Shown: positions 1 to 57,549, numbered from the stretch's first letter. The stretch is 64,000 nt of DNA from Zygnema circumcarinatum SAG 698-1b (GCA_037447605.1 CM074822.1:581492-645491), one strand, 5' to 3'. A program made the numbers and translations. The notes: generated by a model from the letters alone, not told the origin.

Positions 1-2085
1 AAGGGAAACCCTAATTCAGTCAAAGGCATAGTGCAGATGCTTATGAATGGAAGGGGAACCCTAATTCAGTCAAAGGCATAGTACAGGTGCTTAGGAATGG
101 AAGGGGAACCCTAATTCAGTCAAAGGCATAGTACAGATGCTTATGTGCTTAGGATAGTGGTGCTTAGGGGAAGGGGAACCCTAATTCAGTCAAAGGCATA
201 GTACAGATGCTTATGAATGGAAGGGGAACCCTAATTCAGTCAAAGGCATAGTACAGGTGCTTAGGAATGGAAGGGGAACCCTAATTCAGTCAAAGGCATA
301 GTACTTATGAAGGGGAACCCTAATTCAGTCAAAGGCATAGTACAGGTGCTTAGGAATGGAAGGGGAACCCTAATTCAGTCAAAGGCATAGTACAGATGCT
401 TATGAATGGAAGGGAAACCCTAATTCAGTCAAAGGCATAGTACAGATGCTTATGAATGGAAGGGGAACCCTAATTCAGTCAAAGGCATAGTACAGATGCT
501 TATGAATGGAAGGGGAACCCTAATTCAGTCAAAGGCATAGTACAGATGCTTATGAATGGAAGGGGAACCCTAATTCAGTCAAAGGCATAGTACAGGTGCT
601 TATGGAAGGGGAACCCTAATTCAGTCAAAGGCATATGGAAGGGGGGGACCCTAATTCAGTCAAAGGCATAGTACAGGTGCTTAGGAATGGAAGGGGAACC
701 CTAATTCAGTCAAAGGCATAGTACAGATGCTTATGAATGGAAGGGGAACCCTAATTCAGTCTTATATGAAGGGAAGGGGAACCCTAATTCAGGCATAGTA
801 CAGGTGCTTAGGAATGGAAGGGGAACCCTAATTCAGTCAAAGGCATAGTACAGATGCTTATGAATGGAAGGGGAACCCTAATTCAGTCAAAGGCATAGTA
901 CAGGTGCTTATGAATGGAAGGGGAACCCTAATTCAGTCAAAGGCATAGTACAGGTGCTTAGGAATGGAAGGGGAACCCTAATTCAGTCAAAGGCATAGTA
1001 CAGATGCTTATGAATGGAAGGGGAACCCTAATTCAGTCAAAGGCATAGTACAGATGCTTATGAATGGAAGGGGAACCCTAATTCAGTCAAAGGCATAGTA
1101 CAGGTGCTTAGGAATGGAAGGGGACAGGTGCTTAGGAATGGAAGGGGAACCCTAATTCAGTCAAAGGCATAGTACAGATGCTTATGAATGGAAGGGGAAC
1201 CCTAATTCAGTCAAAGGCATAGTACAGGTGCTTAGGAATGGAAGGGGAACCCTAATTCAGTCAAAGGCATAGTACAGATGCTTATGAATGGAAGGGGAAC
1301 CCTAATTCAGTCAAAGGCATAGTACAGGTGCTTAGGAATGGAAGGGGAACCCTAATTCAGTCAAAGGCATAGTACAGATGCTTATGAATGGAAGGGGAAC
1401 CCTAATTCAGTCAAAGGCATAGTACAGATGCTTATGAATGGAAGGGGAACCCTAATTCAGTCAAAGGCATAGTACAGATGCTTATGAATGGAAGGGGAAC
1501 CCTAATTCAGTCAAAGGCCTAATTCAGTCAAAGGCATAGTACAGATGCTTATGAATGGAAGGGGAACCCTAATTCAGTCAAAGGCATAGTACAGATGCTT
1601 ATGAATGGAAGGGGAACCCTAATTCAGTCAGGTGCTTAGGAATGGAAGGCATAGTACAGATGCTTATGAATGGAAGGGGAACCCTAATTCAGTCAAAGGC
1701 ATAGTACAGGTGCTTAGGAATGGAAGGGGAACCCTAATTCAGTCAAAGGCATAGTACAGGTGTTTAGGAATGGAAGGGGAACCCTAATTTAGTCAAAGGC
1801 ATAGTACAGGTGCTTAGGAATGGAAGGGGAACCCTAATTCAGTCAAAGGCATAGTACAAGGCATAGTACAGATGCTTATGAATGGAAGGGGAACCCTAAT
1901 TCAGTCAAAGGCATAGTACAGGTGCTTAGGAATGGAAGGGGAACCCTAATTCAGTCAAAGGCATAGTACAGATGCTTATGAATGGAAGGGGAACCCTAAT
2001 TCAGTCAAAGGCATAGTACAGGTGCTTAGGAATGGAAGGAGAACCCTAATTCAGTCAAAGGCATAGTACAGATGCTTATGAATAA
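1..2085. repeat. Tandem satellite/minisatellite, 50-bp unit (about 40 copies, truncated by window start)
   Basis: Unit AAGGGGAACCCTAATTCAGTCAAAGGCATAGTACAG(A/G)TGCTTA(T/G)GAATGG recurs with 50-bp period (e.g. 51, 101). It lies after the GT donor at 2154 of the minus-strand NAC gene, so it is probably intronic. Confidence 0.95.
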
Positions 2086-2154
2086 TTCAGTCAAGGGTAG
2101 GTAGGCTTGTCCAATCTAGACAAAGGCAAATAGAAAAGACAGAATTTGATGTAC

Positions 2155-3020
2155 CTTCTTTAGGAGAAGAGGACCCCCCCCCATCATCTCCCCCTCTCCA
2201 TTCGCTCTTTTCAAAATAGGAGAAGGACCTTTTGTGACCAATAAGGTTTTTATCCTGGTCGTATACTTCCATTGCAATTCCTTGCTGCTTCCAACGGCCA
2301 CCAGGAGTGATCCGTGACCTTCTCCCACAATTACCTTTCTCCTTGGGAGCTTCGTGAAAGAAGAAGAAAACACTTCTCGATTTGTCGTCGTCCTTCATCA
2401 ACGACTGCTGTACCCCTGCACTTGGCAGCCATGGCGAACATCTTCACAAGGTCAGCCATGTGCTTGAGGTACAAAAGTAACAATACCGAGGACTCTTCTT
2501 CACACTTGATGAATGGTGCAAGGTTTTGAATACGGAACCCTAAGAAAGATTGGCAGACATATCTGCGTAGTCCTTTTCTGTAGCTAGTAGAAGCTCTGTA
2601 TTTGAATCTTCATCAAATGCGAGAAGGTAGATTGCGCATGCCATTGCAACAGTACGGTCAATAGGGCCGATAACAAAGGATGGAGATAGAGTTGATCATA
2701 CCACTGAGCTCCCATGGATGGCACCTGTACACGTTCTCATTAGATTGTATCCAGGGGGGAAGCTCAGCGCCTTCAGCTAACACGTTCTCGAGCATCATAC
2801 AAGAACTTTGATCATCCATGCCCAAAGCCTGCAGCTCACAAATTTAAAGTCAACCATTCAACATTGATCAAAAACTTGCCGGAGGAAAGAGGAACAGGCC
2901 GCTCCCGCTCCCGCTCCCGCTCCCGCTCCCGCTCCCGCTCCCGCTCCCGCTCCCGCTCCCGCTCCCGCTCCCGCTCCCGCTCCCGCTCCCGCTCCCGCTC
3001 CCGCTCCCGCTCCCGCTCCC

Positions 3021-3073
<53 letters not shown>

Positions 3074-3165
3074 CGCTCCCGCTCCCGCTCCCGCTCCCGC
3101 TCCCGCTCCCGCTCCCGCTCCCGCTCCCGCTCCCGCTCCCGCTCCCGCTCCCGCTCCCTCTCCCT

Positions 3166-3197
<32 letters not shown>

Positions 3198-3913
3198 CCA
3201 CCCTTCCCCCACTCTCTCTCGAAGCTGATGTTCTTTTGGGGAGACTAACTCTTCATACCTCTTGAAGGGCCTTTGGAGATGTCGCCGACCGCGGATGCAA
3301 ACCGCGAGCAGCTGCTTCTAGCGCGTGTCTTTTCCCGCAGTAGTCATGAACTTTTCCATTCAGTTCGACGAATTTGTGCTGAACACATTCCGGAATGTTA
3401 CACTTCTTGGAGGCGTCAACTCGTTCTAGGGAAGCCCTTTCTCGATGGAGCAGGACATGACTGAAACTGCAGAAGTCGTGCTGACGCCCTTCACAATGCG
3501 CATAACATGCAGAGAGTACACATGAAGTTTAATTCATTCGGGAATCCACTTGTTCCAGAATCGGTAGAGTTGCCCCCTTATCCCTAAACAGGTCCAATCT
3601 TGATGCAGGCTTCATGTGCCAGTTGAGTATTGCATTGCTATAATCAAGTATCCTATAGATTTTTGCAAGGTATTCCATACAAGAAACAGCTAACAAGCTC
3701 CCAAAAATCTTGTGATGGATGCCAAACTATTCGAATTCTGAGGCCAACTTATCCAGATTAGGGTTATGACTCACCGCCTTCCTCAACAAATGCTGTTCTG
3801 CTGCACGTGCTCAGCCGACAGACAGAAAGTATCTGAGAGCTCCCACTGAGCGGTTTATCGATTCCATGGTTGCTCCCCCCTTCCTCTGCATGCGCAGCCT
3901 CCCTGGCTTCCAT
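2155..3913 (-). CDS. NAC-domain protein with two N-terminal C-x4-C-x12-HD[FY]-C-x3-H repeats; 3' end continues beyond the satellite/window
   Basis: Manual splicing: exons 3913-3775, 3488-3259, 2828-2702, 2415-2155, all GT-AG and phase-compatible (1,0,1), with no stops. NAC motifs: ENVYRCHPWELS|G with the phase-1 intron typical of NAC genes, VFFFF, RRSRITPGGRWKQQG, NLIGHKRSFSYFE. Confidence 0.75.
2899..3198. repeat. (GCTCCC)n hexamer microsatellite with an internal (GCTCCT)n block and a (CT)n tail
   Basis: Direct reading; lies in intron 2 of the NAC gene. Confidence 0.95.
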
Positions 3914-4129
3914 GACGGCCTTTTTAGGGTTTCGGAACCTCCCGGTGCAGGGCTGCCCGCCCATGCACGCCCTTGCAGGACGCCGGGCCGCTCCGGTCCT
4001 CGGAAACAATGGCTTCTGAACGGACACATGCTCTCAGTTCGCATGATTCTCCAATTAAAACGGTTCCATGTATGCATGATGTCATACGCCTTTCCATGGA
4101 GTCATTTGAACGCTTTCAGTTACTCTTTC

Positions 4130-4360
4130 TAGATTCGATCCTCCAGTTATAAACCACCACGTGGCAGCGTTTTGACCGCGTGCTTTTCCAGACGGTGCAA
4201 GGTGGCATGTCTATATGACGTCAATGCAGTTATATGACGTCACTTTACTACATGTGACGAAAGTCATCTGAAGCATGCAATTCGTGTTTTTTTGAATCTA
4301 ATCCTCCAATATTAAACCGCCACGTGGACAAGTGTCACCACGTGGTGCCCGTTCGGATCG
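4130..4360. promoter_or_regulatory. G-box/ACGT-core cluster upstream of the NAC gene
   Basis: Several CCACGTGG and TGACGTCA motifs about 200-450 bp upstream of the ATG at 3913. Confidence 0.4.
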
Positions 4361-33724: not shown

Positions 33725-36700
33725 CTATTTCTTTTTTATCCTCGAAAATGTGCCCGTCTCTGAAAAGTACGTGCTCTGAGTCCCGCTTCCGAGATGTGCT
33801 TGAGCCTGCGCCTGCGGATTGCTCAGCTCAATGCCCTGCACGCCCCGCAACCCTAATCAATACCTTCACATACATGCATACATAACATTCAATCAATCAA
33901 TCAATCAATCAATCGATCTCGCGCCTTCACATCCTTCAAAAAGAGCGTGTCAACAACATTAGGGTTGCTGTTGCAAAGGCATAATCTACACCAGTTTCTA
34001 TTTCGGTTCAGTTTGACCGTACGACGGCTTTAAAATCGCTAATACTAATAGATACTAATAGATACTAATAGATGAGCTTACTGTGCAGTTGCCCCCCCCC
34101 CCCCCCCCCNNNNNNNNNNCCCCCCCCCCCCCCCCCTGTTTAAGCAGAAATCGCAGAACTCATAGAAGGAAGAGAGAGGTCTACCATATTACAAGTGGCT
34201 GAAAAGATAAGCAGGCGGGGGGGGGCACTGACCTGCACTGGAGTGAAGGCTAAGCTGGAGGACAGTCCGGATGTGTTCCCACTGCTGCCATAATGCTTCT
34301 CCTTGAACCTGCATCCCAACATAAGCACTCAGAATCTGCCAATTTCAGACACATTTCATATATATAAGAACATGGAAAGAAGTTCGTCATTGCTTTCAAA
34401 GATAAAACAGAAAAAAAACAACAAATCTTCACTTCTGAAGGGCACACTTTAGGCCCTGCTTTTAGGGATGTTTGGTAGTTACTACGACAGGTCATAGGAC
34501 CAAAAAGAGGAAAGAACAAGATGCAGTCCAATACAACCGCAGATTCTCACTTCTTTGTTTTGACTGTAATTTTTTTCTGGCTCTGTGCGACTCGCAGCTT
34601 GCCACTTCCTGCTTGTCCGAGCATTCCGTAGCCCTCTCCAATACCATCACCTGCATACACCTCCTCCCCACATATCTCACATGCATGAGCCATTTGCTAG
34701 GTCTGACCATGCCTAGTTATAAGTCCCAACATGCCTTGGTCATCCTCCATGGTTAGTCTCCTTAGTCACCCACCCAGTGAGCTCTCCTCCGGAACTCCAA
34801 ACATCATCCTGTTCGCCAGCTTCCTCATATCCGTCATAGCATACCTGCTCTCCCATATGCAGATATCCACCCACAACTCTCTAAGACATTAGGTAGAGCA
34901 GAGGTAGAGGTTTAGAGCAGAAGCTCCCTGCTTCATCAAAACGGACAGCAGACTACATAGAACCTCGATCATTCTGCTGCGAAAGCGAGGAGGATGTGAG
35001 CTAAGAACGTATCATTATTTCCAGGAACTCAGTAAGGGAAGGGACTTAAAAACTAGGAGACCAAGAGTGTTATAGAGCCTCTCTGCCACATTATCCCCTC
35101 TCTCTGCCACATTATCCCCTCTCTCTGCCACATTATCGACTCTCTCTGCCACATTATCGACTCTCTCTGCCACATTATCCCCTCTCTCTGCCACATTATC
35201 CCCTCTCTCTGCCACATTATCGACTCTCTCTGCCACATTATCGACTCTCTCTGCCACATTATCCCCTCTCTCTGCCACATTATCCCCTCTCTCTGCCACA
35301 TTATCCCCTCTCTCTGCCACATTATCCCCTCTCTCTGCTACATTATCCCCTCTCTCTGCCACATTATCCCCTCTCTCTGCCACATTATCCCCTCTCTCTA
35401 AAGCTACACCTCCCACCTCTCTTTCTGCTTCCGAAGACGCAATCCTCCTCTCTTCTTCTTCGGATCAGCATCCGGGACAGGAAGAGGTTTTGGCTGCTTT
35501 GGAGGAGGGGGCTCCTGCCATTTCTCAATTTTACGCTTTATTTCATCCCGTAAAGTCTTCCCATGTTTGCCTCCAGTATCACTTCCTGCTGAATCAACCC
35601 TAGCAGCCAAACTACACTTTCCTGCCACAAGTCTGCAAGCTCGCATTCGGAGAGCAGGGGGTGTACTTTGCACAATTTCACTATTGAATATGAAGCCTGT
35701 ATGCTGAAGGGTGGTTGCTGTAGAAAAGCCTGCAAGATTCTTTTTCTTTGCTCCCAATACGAGGACATTTGCTGCAGGCATATTGGCTAAGTTCGGAAGA
35801 CCCCCTGCAACTCCCATCAGTTGTGCGGCTATTGCACTACCGACTATTGCTGACAAATTAGGGGCGATATATCCCATTCTACTCTCCACAAAAGCAAGGA
35901 CCGTCTTTTTTGTCTCGTCAAGATTTAGGGCTCTCTCGCAAGCCTCCAATGTTTTTTGAAGATTTTCTTCAGTCAAAGGCTTGCCGTTTGTAGTCGATGC
36001 AGTTACCGATACAACCATAATGGTAGCAGAGGGGAGGAGGCCCTCCAAGTCTACTAGGGTTAAGTCCATTTCATTGGCAATTCTTTTCACAACTCGCGCG
36101 TAATCTATGGGATGCAGAACAAGCGACTCGAGCTCTGGAAACTTGAGACGATACTTGTCTCGGATGAAGTTGTGAACGATTACAACCTCGTTGTCAATAT
36201 CGACCATGAGTTGGTTGCAGTCAACAATGAGCTGATAGTTCGGATCATCGATAGATATAGACTCTTGGCTGGCCATTGCATCCCCACCTGCCATTGCCTC
36301 GTCTACTTTCTGCAATCACCATTGCAAAAAAGTTCTTTTTCAAACAAGTATTATTGATCATAGTTGTATTGACGTCTTAGAAGACAAGAAAGTGTACTAA
36401 GCCATCTTTCAATAGCATACACAGTTAATTCCTTATGGTAAGGATGTAAGGATTGTTTCATTCAGTTAGTCCCTCCTCACATCCTGCTCCTTGCCCTAAT
36501 CCGACAATGAACATCACTAGAGATAACCAGGAAAGGTTACCAGTAACATCTGCTTATTATGCAGTGACTTAAGTGAGTGCAAAATCTAAGAGGGTGATAG
36601 CAAATGGCGGTTAAGAGGAGCAACCTTACCTTCATTATCTCGTGATATCGAGCCGAGTTCTGCAGCTTTGCAACGGAGTCAAGATCGTCGTAGTTGAGCG

Positions 36701-37234
36701 CTTCAATGTCGAGCATTTCGTCGTCTCCCCCATCGCCCTCTCCCCCGGGCTCCACATTCTCCTGCAGACCCCGTAGACCTGTTCAGATGCCGCCATGTGT
36801 TAAGGATGCGATGATTCATTTCTGCAACTATAGGTACTATTTGAATGAAGTCTACTCAAAACAAAGTACTNNNNNNNNNNGGGAGGGAGGGAGGGAGGGA
36901 GGGAGGAAGGGAGGGAGGGAGGGAGGGAGGGTGAGAGGGAGAGAGGGAGGGAGGGAGGGTGAGAGGGACGGAGTGAGGGAGGGAGGAAGGAAGGGTTCAC
37001 TATTCCTCTAGCACAAATCTTCAGTCTCCTCACCTGAATCTGGTCCTCATTATCGGAAAGATCATCGAGATCAGCGAGGAAGGAGTCTGCCAAAGTAGCC
37101 TGCAGGCAAGCATGCATTTCCCTCATCAAGAACCATCACAAAGGCTTTTGCAACTCATGTACTCAAAATTTTAATCCTTTCAAAGCCAAGCCTCAGAATC
37201 TCCAAAAACAGCAGAAAGGGGGTAGCTTTACCAT
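33725..37234 (-). CDS. PRP31: U4/U6 snRNP protein Prp31
   Basis: ATG micro-exon 37234-37232, then ATLADSFLADLDDLSD, NOSIC/Nop domain (HNFIRDKYRLKFPELESLV...KKKNLAGFS...ARVDS...KIEKWQEPPPPK), YAMTDMRKLANRMMFGVPEESSLG|DGIGEGYGMLGQAGSGKLRV, SGLSSSLAFTPVQ|GIELSNPQ...YFSETGTFSRIKKK*. Confidence 0.95.
35079..35400. repeat. 21-bp intronic minisatellite CCACATTATC(C/G)(C/A)CTCTCTCTG
   Basis: About 15 copies in a PRP31 intron. Confidence 0.95.
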
Positions 37235-52100: not shown

Positions 52101-55100
52101 CTCAGGTGATAAAAGCCACCCTTTTCTTATATACATTGAGTTGCTTAGGTTACAGTAGCGAGTTAAGTTTTTTTTACTAGTAGTAAATTTACCAATATTA
52201 TTGCCCTCCTCCTTGGATGTCCAGCCAGTTATTTTGAGCATCTGAGGGTACGAAATCAAACTTTTAATAGAACGAGTAATTGCTGATAATCAGCAAACAA
52301 AAGGGCTGAGGTATGAGAAGTCACAGTGTTAGATCACTCTCCCCCACTCCCCCTTTCCCCGTTCCCCCTCCCCCCTCTCCCCCCTCTCCCGTCCCCCATC
52401 CCCTCTTTCCCCCCCACCCTCCCCCTCTCTCCCTCTCCCCTTCCCTCTCCCCCTCCCTGTCCCCCTCCCCTCTCCCTTCTATTCCCTCTCCCCCTCTCTC
52501 TCCCTCCTCTCCCTAAAGCTACTTTTTTCTTTCCTATAGGCTTTACTGACATGCTTAATTTGGACTTTCTTTTGTGCAGGGATTTGCTCCCGAAGTTGCC
52601 CGATCTTCGACTGGTAATTTCTTTTTTTTTTATAGTTCTAAACAAGCCATAAGCCTGCATGAAGATTTTATTTTGAAATTCTGCTGCAAATAGCCTTTTG
52701 GCCATAGAACCCATTTTATCCATTGAATTTGAATCATACACTAGTCTTCTGCTGCCCTCTCCCAGCATCCATTTAAGCTGCCTCTTACTATTGTCAGGAA
52801 ATGGTATTTTTTTTCAGATTTTGATGAGTGCAACCCTAAATTCGGAGCTCTATTCGGACTACTTTGGAGGTTGCCCTATTGTGGAAGTGCCCGGCTTCAC
52901 TCATCCTGTAAGATTCTTTTGTTGTTTTTGTTTTTTTATTTTTTTGTTATTGTTCGATGAGATTCATACGTCAAAAACATGAGTGAACAACTGCGAAGGT
53001 CTCAGTTCAAAACTGAGAATCAACATCGTATTCTCACAGATAGAAAAAGTGGCAGAAAACAGTGGGAGAATGCAAGGCGAAAGTGTTAAAAATATAGTGT
53101 ATGCAGTTTGGGCATTTAAAAACTATCTAACTATCTTAAAGGATCGATTGAAAAGGATAGATCTTTTGTGGGGCTATTCGTGAGAGCAGGTGAAGTCATA
53201 TTACCTTGAAGATGTTCTGAACTTCACTGGGTATGGAGTTAATGGGAGGGAGACTCCCACAAATGTGAGAGCGGAAAAGGATGGAGTCAATGGTGAGGCA
53301 GAGGAGGTGAGAGAGGATTGGACGGGGGAAGATGCGGCAGCCATGGATGATGCCATAAGCAGAGCATGGATGGGAGAGGACTTTGATCTCCTCATGCTGG
53401 TAGTGGGAGGGGGAGGTTCGAAACTCTGCAACTATGGCCATTCAGAAACAGGCTCTACTCCTCTTATGGTTGCGGCTGGTAGGTCCACTTACCATGATGG
53501 AAGGTGCTTTTATGATGGTGGGTAGTGCTCTTATCATGGTGGGTAGTGCTTTTGTGATGATGGGTAGTGCTCTTATCATGGTGGGTAGTGCTTTTATGAT
53601 GCTGGGTAGTGCTCTTATCATGGTGGGTAGTGTTCTTATCATGGTGGGTGGTGCTCTTATGACGTGGGTATTAGTAAGGGGAATGTGGTGTAGGTTTTGG
53701 ATTTCATCTCTTTGTTTAAGGGACTCTTTTGTCCTATGGCTGCGTGGTCAGTGTTGAGATAAGCAGAAACCTTTAATTTTGGAATTTTGTGAAGAAATTT
53801 TTACTTTCTTTGACTGAGCTAGGGAGCATGAGTTTGTATGTATTGCAGGAAAAGGTCGGAAAGAAGAAGTGGAAGAGCTTTTAGCCATGGGGGCAGATCA
53901 CGAGCAGAAAGCTTTTGATGGAAGTTGTGCCATGGATTGGGCTCAACATTTCCAGCAGGTATACCCCCTATGATGTTGAGGATAGTATTCACCCAGTTAA
54001 GCTTATTTGGGTAAATCTGAAATGTTCCAACTTTTGGGTATCTCTCCAGCTTGCATACTTCTTCTCTATCCGTATCTATTTGAAGCTTTGGACCTCTGCT
54101 ACATCTCTCTTTCTTGCCTGCCAACTTCATAACTAAGGCATATGCCTAAATCATTATAACTGTATGACTAAGCCATTTACGTTCTTACGATTTGCAGGAG
54201 GAAATAGTTGCAATTTTACAAAGGCATGCAGAGAAGAAGGAGAAAGAAGCAGCTGATGTGGCCGAAGCAGCAGTCCTTAAAAAGTATCAAATGTCAACCG
54301 ACCAAGAGGAAACAGATATAGTACTCATCGAAGGTCTTTTGCAGTACATTTGCAGCCCCACAAATACTGATTTCACCGACCTCGCAGACGGAGCAATTCT
54401 CGTATTCGTGCCAGGATGGGACGACATTTCTCGTCTCCGGGAAAAGCTCCAATCCTCTCCTCTCTTTGGAAATTCGTCTAAATTCACAATCTTACCACTC
54501 CACTCTCAAGTCCCTTCTTTAGAGCAACGCAAAGTTTTTCAACGCCCTCCCAAAGGAGTGCGGAAAATTGTCTTAGCCACAAACATTGCAGAAACAGCAA
54601 TCACAATTGATGATGTTGTGTTTGTTATCGATACCGGAAGAGCGAAAGAAAAGAGCTATGACCCATATAGCAATGTTTCAACACTACAAATGACATGGAT
54701 TTCTAGGGCCAGTGCTCGGCAGAGAGAGGGAAGAGCAGGGAGAGTCCGACCCGGAGTTTGTTATCATCTTTTTTCAAAGACGAGAGCAGCAGCTTTGCCT
54801 GAATTTCAAGTGCCGGAAATCAAAAGGACTCCTTTGGAAGAGCTTTGTTTGCAGGTGAGAGCTGTGCAGGGGGAGAGGTGTTTAGGATTGAGAAAAATAA
54901 ACGTTTCATTTAGTACTGTTTGCTTGCTTTATGGTCTTGTCTGTAAGAGCTCTGTTTGCAGGTGAGAGCTGTGCAGGGGGATAGGGGTTTAGGGTTGAGA
55001 AAAATAAACGTTCCATATAGTACTGTTTGCTTGCTTTATGATCTTGTCCGTAAGAGCTTTGTTTGCAGGTGAGAGCTGTGCAGGGGGATAGGGGTTTAGG

Positions 55101-57549
55101 ATTGAGAAAACGAAAAGTTCCATTTAGTACTATGGTGGGGAAGATCAGGGAACAGGGGAGGGGGGAGGGGAAGAGGGGGTGTGACTACAAAAAAGATCAG
55201 TAGAAAGGAGTATTTATTCGAGCATTCCAAGGAAAAATATGCATTTACAATAATCAGTGTTGTAGAGTAACTGATATAAGTTGAAAGTGGAACTTGTGGA
55301 AGCCTCTCAGTTCTCTCACCTTCATTATTTTTACCTTCTACAAGCTTCTGATCTTTTTGAGCCATTGATCAGCTTGTTTAGTGCTTGTACTAAAGTATCC
55401 ATCAACAATTTCACTTGCACCCATTGAAAACAAACAGGCGTTTCGTATATGCGTTAAAGAATCCCCTCTTCTTTGCAGGTGAAATTGTTGAACCCAAATC
55501 TTGAAATCAGGGAATTCATCGGCAAAGCTATTGAAGCTCCCGTAGATGCAGCTGTGAAGAATGCTATCGAGCTTCTGCAGGATATTGGGGCTCTAAGTAC
55601 TAATGAAAAACTGACAGAACTTGGGCAGCAACTTGGCTCTCTCCCACTCCACCCCACAGTCAGCAAAATGCTCCTTCATGCTGTTTTGCTCAATTGCTTA
55701 GACCCTGCTCTTACAATAGCTTCGGCTACAACCTACAGAGACCCCTTTGTTCTTCCCATGAGCCCTATGCAAAAACAGAGAGCATTAGATCTGAGGCAGC
55801 AATTGGCAAATATGTATGGGGGAGGAAGCGATCATTTGGCACTTATCGCTGCTTTTGAGATGTGGGAGGGAGCGAGACGCAAAGGGAAAGAGCAGGAGTT
55901 TTGCTCCCAGTACTTTGTTTCTGGGGGGACTATGAATATGCTGGCAGGAATGCGAAGGCAATTGCAAGGAGAGCTTTGCAGAAAGGGCTTTATTTCTAGT
56001 GAGGATCATGCATGTAGTTCGAATGCACAAAACCCAGGCATTATTAGGGCAGTTTTAGCTGCAGGAATGTACCCAATGGTTGGTAGTTTGCTCCCTCCCT
56101 TACCCGGAGGGGGAGGGAGGAATACCCTAGTACAAACTGCGAGAGGAGAGAAGGCTCGTATTCATCCACATTCTACAAATTCTAGGTTTCTCCATCAAGG
56201 AGGGCTTTCTGAGGGGGGATCTAAGGAAGCTTCTGCCCAGCCATTACTTGTGTTTGATGAGGTTACAAGGGGGGAGTCCTTAGTAACTATTCGGTCTTCC
56301 ACAGTGGTGAAACCCCACTCACTTGTACTCATTGTAGCGGAGATGGTGGTCTGCGCTATAAAGAATTCTGAGGACGATGCAGAAGAGGGAAAGAAGGCAG
56401 AGGAAGAACAAAAAGCTCAAGCTCAAACAGCACCTCCTGAAGCGGTAGAAGAAGAAGAAGAAGAAGAGGAAGAGGAAGAGCCGGAGAGTGATGATGATGC
56501 TCCATTGAAACCCAACCCTTTGAGCAAAGAGGAGAGAGCTAAGAGGGAGCAGGATGAGCTTATGAGTGATCCGGAGAGGAGAGTTGTGGTCGTATTGGAC
56601 CGATGGCTGCGCTTTGAAACGACGGCGTTTGAAGCAGCGCAGCTGTTCTGCCTCAGAGAGCGATTGGCAGCTGCTTTTGCTTTTCGGGTAAGCCTTTTTA
56701 AATCACTTTCGTCATCTCCTAAATTTGACATGTTAGAGGTGTTCAAACTTACACAAGTTTCATACATGTGGATTTCTAAATCAGGAATGATTTCGGGTAA
56801 AATTTGTAGTAAAGGTGAAACTTTTAAGAGGTGCTGTTTTTAACCAGATTCTGTATAGCAACAGGCTAACTCTGAACCCCCTATCGCTTTCTGTTATGAA
56901 TTTGAAATGGGATTTTAGACGTGGACTCTCTCTCTCTCTTTCTCAACACCCCCACCCCCCCTCCCCTCCTTCCCCACTCTCTCTCTCTCTCGTTCTGTAG
57001 GTGAAGTACCCGAAGGAGCCGTTTCCTCCCATCTATGCGGTCTCTCTTTACACCATTGCCTGCATGCTTTCATATGAGGGTGTCCTTAACATCCCTCCTC
57101 CAGTAGCCCTCAGCTCAATGCCCCCAATGGGCTCCCCTATGGGGACAGCCCACTGGCAACCTCCCCTTTTAAAAGCCGCCCCATCTGCACATATCCTCCC
57201 CAATACAAGCCGTGGGTCTGTTCAAGCAGGCCCTTCTAGAGGAGGTCTACCTTCACAGGGAAGGGGCCAATTTCCTGCAGGGTCTGTGAGAGGAGGCAGA
57301 CAGGGGACTGGACGGGGGTCAAGTGATGAGGCTAGTCAGGGGCTCCATGGTTCAAGAGAGGATGGGAGTGAGAGAGGGAGAGGGAGAGGGAGAGGGAGCA
57401 ACGTGTATAGCAGAGGGGCGTTTGCCCAGTCTAGAGGTAGTGGTGGTGGGAGAGGATCTTCAATCAATCCAAGGGACCTTCAAGGAGGGACTTCTGAAGG
57501 TGGTAAACAACAAAGCAGTTCCTTTGATGCGAAGCGGCATCGGCGATGA
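46199..57549 (+). CDS. DExH-box RNA helicase with R3H domain, ankyrin insert, HA2 and OB-fold (YTHDC2/DExH6-like, no YTH domain)
   Basis: About 15 exons: RGG-rich start, R3H (DRAIVHDLCRKHG), GQTGCGKTTQ, CTQPRRISA, DEIHERD, MSATL, ankyrin STPLMVAA|GKGR...LLAMGAD, ILVFVPGWDDI, ATNIAETAITIDD, QREGRAGRV, HA2 (LGSLPLHP), OB_NTP_bind (IHPHS), RGG-rich C-terminus. An N gap lies in exon 1. Confidence 0.93.
48485..49077. repeat. 24-bp intronic minisatellite GACTAA(C/G)CTTCAGCCGCTAGATTT
   Basis: About 24 copies between the helicase GKTTQ and VPQ exons. Confidence 0.95.
53490..53662. repeat. 21-bp intronic minisatellite CTTATCATGGTGGGTAGTGCT
   Basis: About 8 copies after the ankyrin exon donor. Confidence 0.9.
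54838..55130. repeat. 107-bp tandem triplication spanning a helicase exon end and 5' splice site
   Basis: Copies start at 54838, 54945 and 55052; each contains TTTGCAG|GTGAGA. Confidence 0.9.

Follow-up and report, generated by a model that had tools for sequence, protein, structure and literature searches.

A tandem HD[FY]C finger pair ahead of a divergent NAC domain: a probable finger-NAC gene of Zygnema circumcarinatum and its counterparts in Marchantia

Do two small cysteine- and histidine-containing fingers and a NAC-type DNA-binding domain, encoded next to each other on the minus strand of a 64,000-nucleotide stretch of Zygnema circumcarinatum SAG 698-1b DNA (GCA_037447605.1 CM074822.1:581492-645491; the whole stretch is indicated here as "the window"), belong to a single protein? 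A preliminary description, made from the sequence alone, had joined positions 3913 to 2155 into four exons, where a tandem finger pair is fused in frame to NAC subdomains B-D, and had seen in them an undescribed NAC architecture with an accessory zinc-binding module. The results reported below make it quite probable that the locus holds two-thirds, counted from the 5' end, of a gene which is transcribed and spliced and codes for a divergent NAC-family DNA-binding protein with an N-terminal tandem pair of fingers, each built around an HD[FY]C core.

The four exons (3913-3775, 3488-3259, 2828-2702 and 2415-2155, minus strand) are in frame, with GT-AG borders throughout, and give 757 nucleotides free of stops; neither a stop nor a frameshift is found across 252 codons, in agreement with the phase-compatible, stop-free splicing originally proposed. 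The product features, in order, 31 residues, finger 1 (CRLSTC-x15-C-x3-H), a 16-residue linker, finger 2 (CNIPEC-x15-C-x3-H) and two NAC-like exons; the two finger motifs and their identical spacing are as first described. The features of the locus are reported here, one per line.

Exon 1, 3775-3913, minus strand: ATG at 3913-3911, 46 codons, C-x4-C knuckle of finger 1 from 3820, GT donor at 3774-3773.
Exon 2, 3259-3488, minus strand: second half of finger 1 (HDFCSFSH, 3480-3457), linker, complete finger 2 (3402-3325) with its HA..A..G helix.
Intron 2, 2829-3258, minus strand: (CCGCTC)47 microsatellite at 2899-3180, (CT)n run at 3154-3198.
Exon 3, 2702-2828, minus strand: apparently degenerate NAC subdomain A, followed by subdomain B (..LPPWIQSNENVYRCHPWELSG).
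Intron 3 (proposed), 2416-2701, minus strand: GT-AG borders; in the retained form the frame stops 14 codons on.
Exon 4, 2155-2415, minus strand: NAC subdomains C-D, VFFFF..RRSRITPGGRWKQQG..LIGHKRSFSYF.
Start of intron 4, 1-2154, minus strand: 50-bp satellite filling 1-2083; exon 5 falls outside the window.

Assembled contigs of three runs (X15, X16 and X17) were placed on positions 2100-2898. Contigs lose rare isoforms: where a joint is not seen, retention is documented, while splicing is not thereby disproved. Two of the four joints are observed. An X17 contig (record 9) passes from exon 3 into the final 29 letters of exon 2, and a scripted comparison finds its joint, 3259/2828, equal letter for letter to the predicted spliced sequence and in frame; a single RNA therefore carries the finger exon together with the first NAC exon, and one of the junctions singled out for verification in the preliminary description is present. 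At the other end of the model, an X15 contig (record 2) leaves exon 4 exactly at the donor at 2155 and continues with 28 letters foreign to the window, which shows that the gene extends past the 50-bp satellite. These letters, the start of exon 5 (AGTTTCAAGAAAGCACAGG), read in frame E-F-Q-E-S-T-G-W-R; the nine codons of this overhang, EFQESTGWR, are the known part of exon 5, fit the W-x-M-x-E-Y end of subdomain D and match the W-R-M-x-E-Y part of a homologue on contig L001, described below.

A further X15 contig (record 4, 61 letters) joins 2880-2898 of intron 2 and two non-genomic letters to 2387-2416, skipping exon 3; no GT donor is found at the break, and the contig could represent a first exon used as an alternative, an allelic form or a chimera produced in assembly. 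This odd contig is the only one where the exon-4 acceptor at 2415 is used.

The exact, in-frame joint of 3259 to 2828, together with an exon 2 which is open up to its donor, speaks against a different interpretation of the locus, where two adjacent genes, one for a small protein with fingers and one for a NAC factor, are linked only by read-through or by mis-joined contigs. A low-depth contig with intron 2 unspliced exists (X15 record 5), and contig evidence covers 2100-2898 plus overhangs, so that exon 1 and the transcription start fall outside it: both facts may be put in its favor. Taken with the homologues discussed below, the existence of two separate genes is nevertheless very improbable.

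The finger pair exceeds what chance would produce. The half motif H-[DE]-[FYW]-C-x3-H occurs twice, both times at this gene, compared to 0.03 occurrences per shuffled window. Against a profile of 144 fingers of the family described below, the window's own being left out, finger 1 of the spliced protein reaches 41.8 bits (E 7e-12) and finger 2 reaches 54.2 bits (E 9e-16), while nothing in the rest of the six-frame translation of the window exceeds 12 bits. All eight zinc-ligand residues and both HD[FY]C cores are intact. Since finger 1 is interrupted by an intron, its two halves can also be scored apart: they reach 22.1 and 11.6 bits, the latter for the knuckle half, and the gain obtained by splicing supports the joint 3775/3488, on the basis of the profile, not of reads. 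The joined finger aligns, across this joint, with finger 2 of a Marchantia homologue. Two other candidates were rejected: an unspliced finger 1, using an intron-encoded CVLSAC, scores only the 22.1 bits mentioned above, and a third finger (C-x4-C-x16-C-x3-H), which would precede exon 1 closely at 4043-3963 and is read in a different frame, scores 2.2 bits on the family profile.

Some other elements of the locus are found around these exons. A further in-frame ATG is located at 3964-3962, 17 codons upstream of the ATG at 3913 taken here as the start, and the start codon may be either of the two. On the minus strand, at 4125-4165 and 4290-4330, 210-420 nucleotides upstream of the ATG, a paired element of about 35 nucleotides (CCACGTGG[CT]GGTTTA..TGGAGGAT..) carries in each copy a CACGTGG core, similar to a G-box or abscisic acid-responsive element (ABRE); the pair was found by eye and is absent from the repeat-tool output. 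The satellite at 1-2083, with at least 41 copies of a unit close to AAGGGGAACCCTAATTCAGTCAAAGGCATAGTACAGATGCTTATGAATGG, reaches the window edge and sits within intron 4 of the finger-NAC gene. The (CCGCTC)47 and (CT)n repeats of intron 2 (2899-3198) probably explain the occurrence of 5-6% of the sampled words in marine metatranscriptomes.

What kind of finger is present at this locus? An exhaustive phmmer search, with exon 2 as a query against 1.84 billion cluster representatives (E<=1e-3), retrieved 146 proteins, with a best E of 8e-22; most contain two or three tandem matches, up to a maximum of seven, and three tandem units are the usual number in the family. The database search for the finger repeat, suggested when the locus was first described, has thus revealed an extended family. 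From its members 242 units were extracted, with the consensus C-x-L-P-G-C-x14-16-H-D-[FY]-C-G-R-x-H-A-x2-A-x3-G, where the three cysteines are invariant and the histidine is found in at least 90%. The window fingers fit this pattern, C-x4-C-x14-16-H-D-[FY]-C-x3-H followed by the A-x2-A-x3-G helix, in tandem (HD[FY]C family, alignment A2).

The units are associated to a variety of partner domains: among the 146 proteins, 25 carry a PARP catalytic domain, 17 a RING, 5 a NADAR and 2 a CCCH domain, while TruD, RNase H/RVT_3 and 3'-5' exonuclease are found as further partners. The mention, in the preliminary description, of similar repeats in PARP and ADP-ribose-related proteins outside plants is borne out by the PARP and NADAR members. 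The family is spread over cryptophytes, haptophytes, stramenopiles, dinoflagellates, amoebae and fungi; named members come from Hanusia phi, a pavlovalean haptophyte, Discosporangium, Tribonema, Polarella, Balamuthia and MMETSP protists, and clusters of the AlphaFold DB show the unit also in fungal and oomycete NADAR, PARP and TruD proteins. A protein from a Parachlamydiales metagenome-assembled genome (P0019, MBN2479086.1) is the lone exception in an otherwise eukaryotic family, and may have been acquired from a host or be a contaminant. Triple-finger PARP, NADAR or RING proteins are exemplified by Polarella glacialis CAE8641545.1, Tribonema minus KAG5189803.1 and Hanusia phi EP00960_P009331. 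The fingers of these protist and fungal proteins are 35-46% identical to exon 2 of the window, with equal spacing and helix, but they usually number three, instead of two, and their effector domains are ADP-ribosyl transferases or hydrolases, E3 ligases or RNA enzymes, where the window gene features a DNA-binding NAC domain.

No Pfam model covers the HD[FY]C units: the window fingers have no Pfam match at E<=10 and are invisible to PROSITE too. Sequence-profile searches of the PDB with the finger gave a best E of 0.19. AlphaFold2, run on the unit alignment, predicts a knuckle, a hairpin and a helix at 29-38, beginning at the third ligand, with a predicted local distance difference test (pLDDT) of 82.6; the closest shape is that of a basidiomycete PARP cluster (template modelling score, TM, 0.86; root-mean-square deviation 1.5 over all 45 residues). 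Weak structural neighbours, all below significance, are L24e, MYND, A20 and YacG, treble-clef structures of which several belong to the TRASH clan (membership according to PMC4047054).

In the preliminary description the fingers had been set beside canonical CCCH ones. The difference in spacing reported there is real: CCCH fingers follow C-x7-8-C-x5-C-x3-H, those of the window C-x4-C-x15-C-x3-H, with no zf-CCCH match, and this identification is rejected; a language-model search with exon 2 finds only weak CCCH-like matches (<=0.73), below the meaningful level. The idea of a CCCH variant has instead to be corrected. The HD[FY]C fingers are better read as a ligand-spacing variant, or offshoot, of FCS/MYM-type (TRASH-clan) fingers, and are not proposed to be zf-FCS proper, which has been reported absent from plants (PMC4047054). 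Features shared with zf-FCS/MYM (PF06467, CL0175; plant FLZ/DUF581 included) are one predicted zinc site, a third ligand in an aromatic-Cys-[Ser/Gly] context (HDFCS in finger 1), the helix and the tandem arrays. The ligands differ, C-x2-C...[FY]-C-S-x2-C in zf-FCS and C-x4-C...[FY]-C-[SG]-x2-H in the window, and the conserved H-D ahead of the aromatic residue is a further difference of the window fingers. Intermediate forms are found within the family: some members feature a V-x-x-x-N-G-K-V-H-D-F-C-G-K core with C-x2-C and C-x3-C spacing, and in the four-finger NADAR protein P0131, the segment 177-211 matches Pfam zf-FCS with 28.7 bits (cut-off 22.4), while residues 189-219 match the HD[FY]C profile with 29.5 bits. 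Such bridging members, along with the weak TRASH and treble-clef neighbours, point to an FCS/MYM-type rather than a CCCH finger; the link of the window fingers to zf-FCS is only transitive, via P0131.

The second half of the protein belongs to the NAC domain. Exon 4 alone matches Pfam NAM with 35.4 bits (cut-off 27; E 1.7e-8), at 2204-2395, over profile positions 47-108 of 122. When aligned to residues 65-116 of the solved ANAC092 (7xlj), it retains [WF][YF]FF, R-x-x-R-x-T, G-x-W-K-x-x-G and L-[VI]-G-x-K; the DNA-contact elements of subdomains C-D are present, RRSRITPGGRWKQQG being aligned with LRTNRATEAGYWKATG of ANAC092. Exon 3 alone has no Pfam match. It is collinear with residues 178-227 of P0110, a homologue in which NAM profile positions 6-47 match this region; its start, ALGMDDQSSCMMLENVL, aligns just loosely with KPGFELKDEEAIRLIE of P0110, when compared for the subdomain A dimer-interface motif LPPGFRFHPTDEEL. 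NAC subdomains B-D, originally placed after the fingers, are found, and a degenerate subdomain A is apparently encoded in exon 3 in addition to B. With canonical NAC proteins (NAM PF02365; ANAC092/ORE1, 7xlj) the window gene has in common the core beta-sheet motifs and an intron after subdomain B. In canonical proteins, however, the domain is N-terminal and the LPPGFRFHPTDEEL motif intact, while here the motif seems degenerate and the domain is internal: about 123 residues, including the two fingers, precede it, so that it is not at the extreme N-terminus. Word-based searches found no canonical NAC as a near relative, and nothing at all when exon 4 was the query.

Is the association of fingers and NAC domain peculiar to this locus? 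Two of the 146 family members also carry NAM: P0072, from Marchantia polymorpha, and P0110. The former corresponds to Mp5g17870/MARPO_0084s0034 (BBN12159.1, PTQ33945.1), a protein of 487 residues with three fingers and NAM at 265-356, which bears the automatic UniRef name "NAC domain-containing protein" and is listed at NCBI as a "hypothetical protein". Its orthologue in M. paleacea, Mapa_006808, also a hypothetical protein, is 73% identical and likewise features fingers and NAC; it was the only protein retrieved by a word-based search with the Marchantia sequence. When the two window fingers, with their linker, are compared to Marchantia fingers 2 and 3, the alignment is nearly gapless and identity reaches 46%. 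Introns are shared too: in Mp5g17870 they are found directly before NAC subdomain A and directly after PW-E-I-V-P-G (PW-x-[IL]), the positions of introns 2 and 3 of the window gene. Differences concern the fingers, three in one exon in Marchantia, two in the window, with an intron within the first; an additional intron in subdomain D, present in the window gene and not in Marchantia; and the NAC parts, strongly diverged, the NAM match reaching 25.9 bits in Marchantia, less than the cut-off, and 35.4 in window exon 4. The window gene and Mp5g17870 are probably of one origin, with the finger exon or exons set, in both, before an otherwise ordinary NAC exon layout.

In P0110, encoded by contig L001, three fingers and NAC subdomains A-B share one unbroken open reading frame (ORF). 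Its NAC part is the closest to that of the window; at the DNA level, L001 and the window show no similarity. At 5095-5110 of L001 a single in-frame TAA separates subdomains B and C, and subdomains C-E follow in the same frame; the TAA could result from a nonsense mutation or from an error in the reads, or be the mark of a variant genetic code. The finger-NAC architecture is conserved in at least three lineages. Since Marchantia has a single annotated gene with equal domain order, and P0110 holds fingers and NAC A-B in a single ORF, a read-through artefact is excluded.

Among described proteins, the nearest idea, a zinc finger before a NAC-like region, is VOZ, a plant DNA-binding protein where the finger is directly ahead of a NAC-like basic region (PMC6321167). 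VOZ has been reported absent from Marchantia (PMC6204039); as described, it has a single finger within its "domain B", while the window gene has two, N-terminal ones. By protein-language features the Marchantia homologue groups with NAC clusters (97 out of 100), and VOZ first appears at rank 79. A survey of 18,774 NAC proteins lists no chimeric NAC for Marchantia (PMC7147800), and the literature search found nothing on Mp5g17870, Mapoly0084s0034 or MARPO_0084s0034, nor any description of the HD[FY]C finger family or of a finger-NAC class. The claim of an undescribed NAC architecture therefore holds for the literature, while homologues are already deposited in the databases, as hypothetical or automatically named proteins: finger-NAC is an undescribed rather than an unseen architecture, and not a new kind of system.

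A number of observations weigh against the assignment of the locus to a functional finger-NAC gene. The joint 2702/2415, another of the junctions to be verified, is not observed in the contigs of the three runs, which run through intron 3: the intron is kept in X15 record 3, X16 record 6 and X17 records 8 and 9, and its retention would yield a truncated, finger-only product, with a stop 14 codons on. The runs, whose kind is off record, are taken as RNA solely because spliced forms occur. Subdomain A is barely recognisable, and the end of the NAC domain lies beyond the window. No close orthologue (>50% identity) of the window gene is found among 15 billion proteins. Pfam zf-FCS (PF06467) and zf-FLZ do not match the window exons, zf-FCS not even at E<=10, and among solved zinc fingers no significant similarity is found, Foldseek against the PDB giving E>1 in all cases and VIA Z<=3.

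Some of these facts would fit a gene copy that is decaying or reduced, where transcripts for the most part keep intron 3 and yield no more than a short protein with the two fingers, if any useful product, the NAC part being a relic. Besides the presence of intron 3 in all contigs, with the 2702/2415 joint unseen, and the degenerate subdomain A, the repeats, a satellite of more than 2 kb in intron 4 and a 280-bp microsatellite in intron 2, are in line with decay, and so is the one contig which takes the exon-4 acceptor and omits exon 3. Yet the eight zinc ligands, both HD[FY]C cores and the DNA-contact motifs of the NAC part are all preserved, over 252 open codons, introns 2 and 4 are correctly spliced out in contigs, and, rare isoforms being lost from contigs, an unseen joint is not proof of absence. 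Decay of the copy is, on the whole, improbable.

If the locus is an intact finger-NAC gene, what may the fingers do? Each finger would be a small treble-clef-like module, where the C-x4-C knuckle and the C-x3-H at the start of the helix hold one zinc; we infer that C, C, C and H of each finger are its ligands. The NAC sheet, with R-x-x-R and G-x-W-K-x-x-G, presumably binds DNA, and the fingers would most likely act as an accessory targeting module, adding a second recognition function. Of the interpretation first given to the locus, the finger-NAC fusion is thus confirmed as real, by the X17 contig, Marchantia and P0110, and the accessory zinc module stands as a prediction. The favored option, held with a confidence close to even but not reaching it, is that the fingers bind nucleic acid, RNA or DNA, non-specifically, the docking of a partner protein coming second: the suggestion comes from the recurrence of the finger on PARP, NADAR, TruD, RNase H, exonuclease and CCCH proteins, which work on nucleic acids or in their vicinity, and from the reported behavior of FCS fingers, which bind RNA/DNA or proteins, those of Polyhomeotic type binding both RNA and DNA (PMC4047054). 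As subdomain A is degenerate, it may also be speculated that the fingers stand in for the usual NAC dimer contact.

The same partner list can be read in another way. RING E3 (17), PARP (25) and NADAR (5) proteins are related to ubiquitin and ADP-ribose signalling, and the weak structural neighbours include the ubiquitin-binding A20 and the peptide-binding MYND; plant FLZ fingers, as well as Scm and Sfmbt FCS fingers, mediate protein-protein contacts (PMC4047054). The gene being equally real, its fingers could accordingly read a protein or a modification (ubiquitin, SUMO, ADP-ribose or a partner), and recruit or regulate the NAC factor. This is possible, with appreciable doubt: the structural matches which would support it are all below significance, and HD[FY]C fingers are also found on proteins whose targets are nucleic acids (TruD, RNase H, CCCH and a 3'-5' exonuclease).

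Elsewhere in the window, a PRP31 (U4/U6 small nuclear ribonucleoprotein) gene is located on the minus strand at 33731-36725, with one exon of 303 codons at 35404-36315. The PRP31 exon is 79% identical to that of Riccia, 78% to Sphagnum and 76% to Diphasiastrum, and thus at a similar distance from liverworts, mosses and lycophytes; its nearest matches, 88% and 82% identical, are transcriptome contigs. The C-terminal region of a DEAH-type helicase (HA2, OB) is found at 54192-56843.

The window locus and the Marchantia genes show that NAC proteins which carry, at their N-terminus, a module predicted to bind zinc form a conserved class. They also reveal a widespread eukaryotic finger family, made of at least 146 clusters at 50% identity, with neither a Pfam model nor a solved structure. 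A broader scenario, put forward as rather unlikely, is that finger-NAC is an old NAC-related lineage retained in bryophytes, where a finger inherited from the protist toolkit, found there on PARP, NADAR and RING proteins, and sensing nucleic acid or ADP-ribose/ubiquitin, gates or targets NAC DNA binding; such a lineage might be sister, or ancestral, to VOZ. If true, it would provide a first handle on the assembly of NAC-type domains before the land-plant radiation. Marchantia being genetically tractable, what the architecture does, and what the finger does, is directly testable there.

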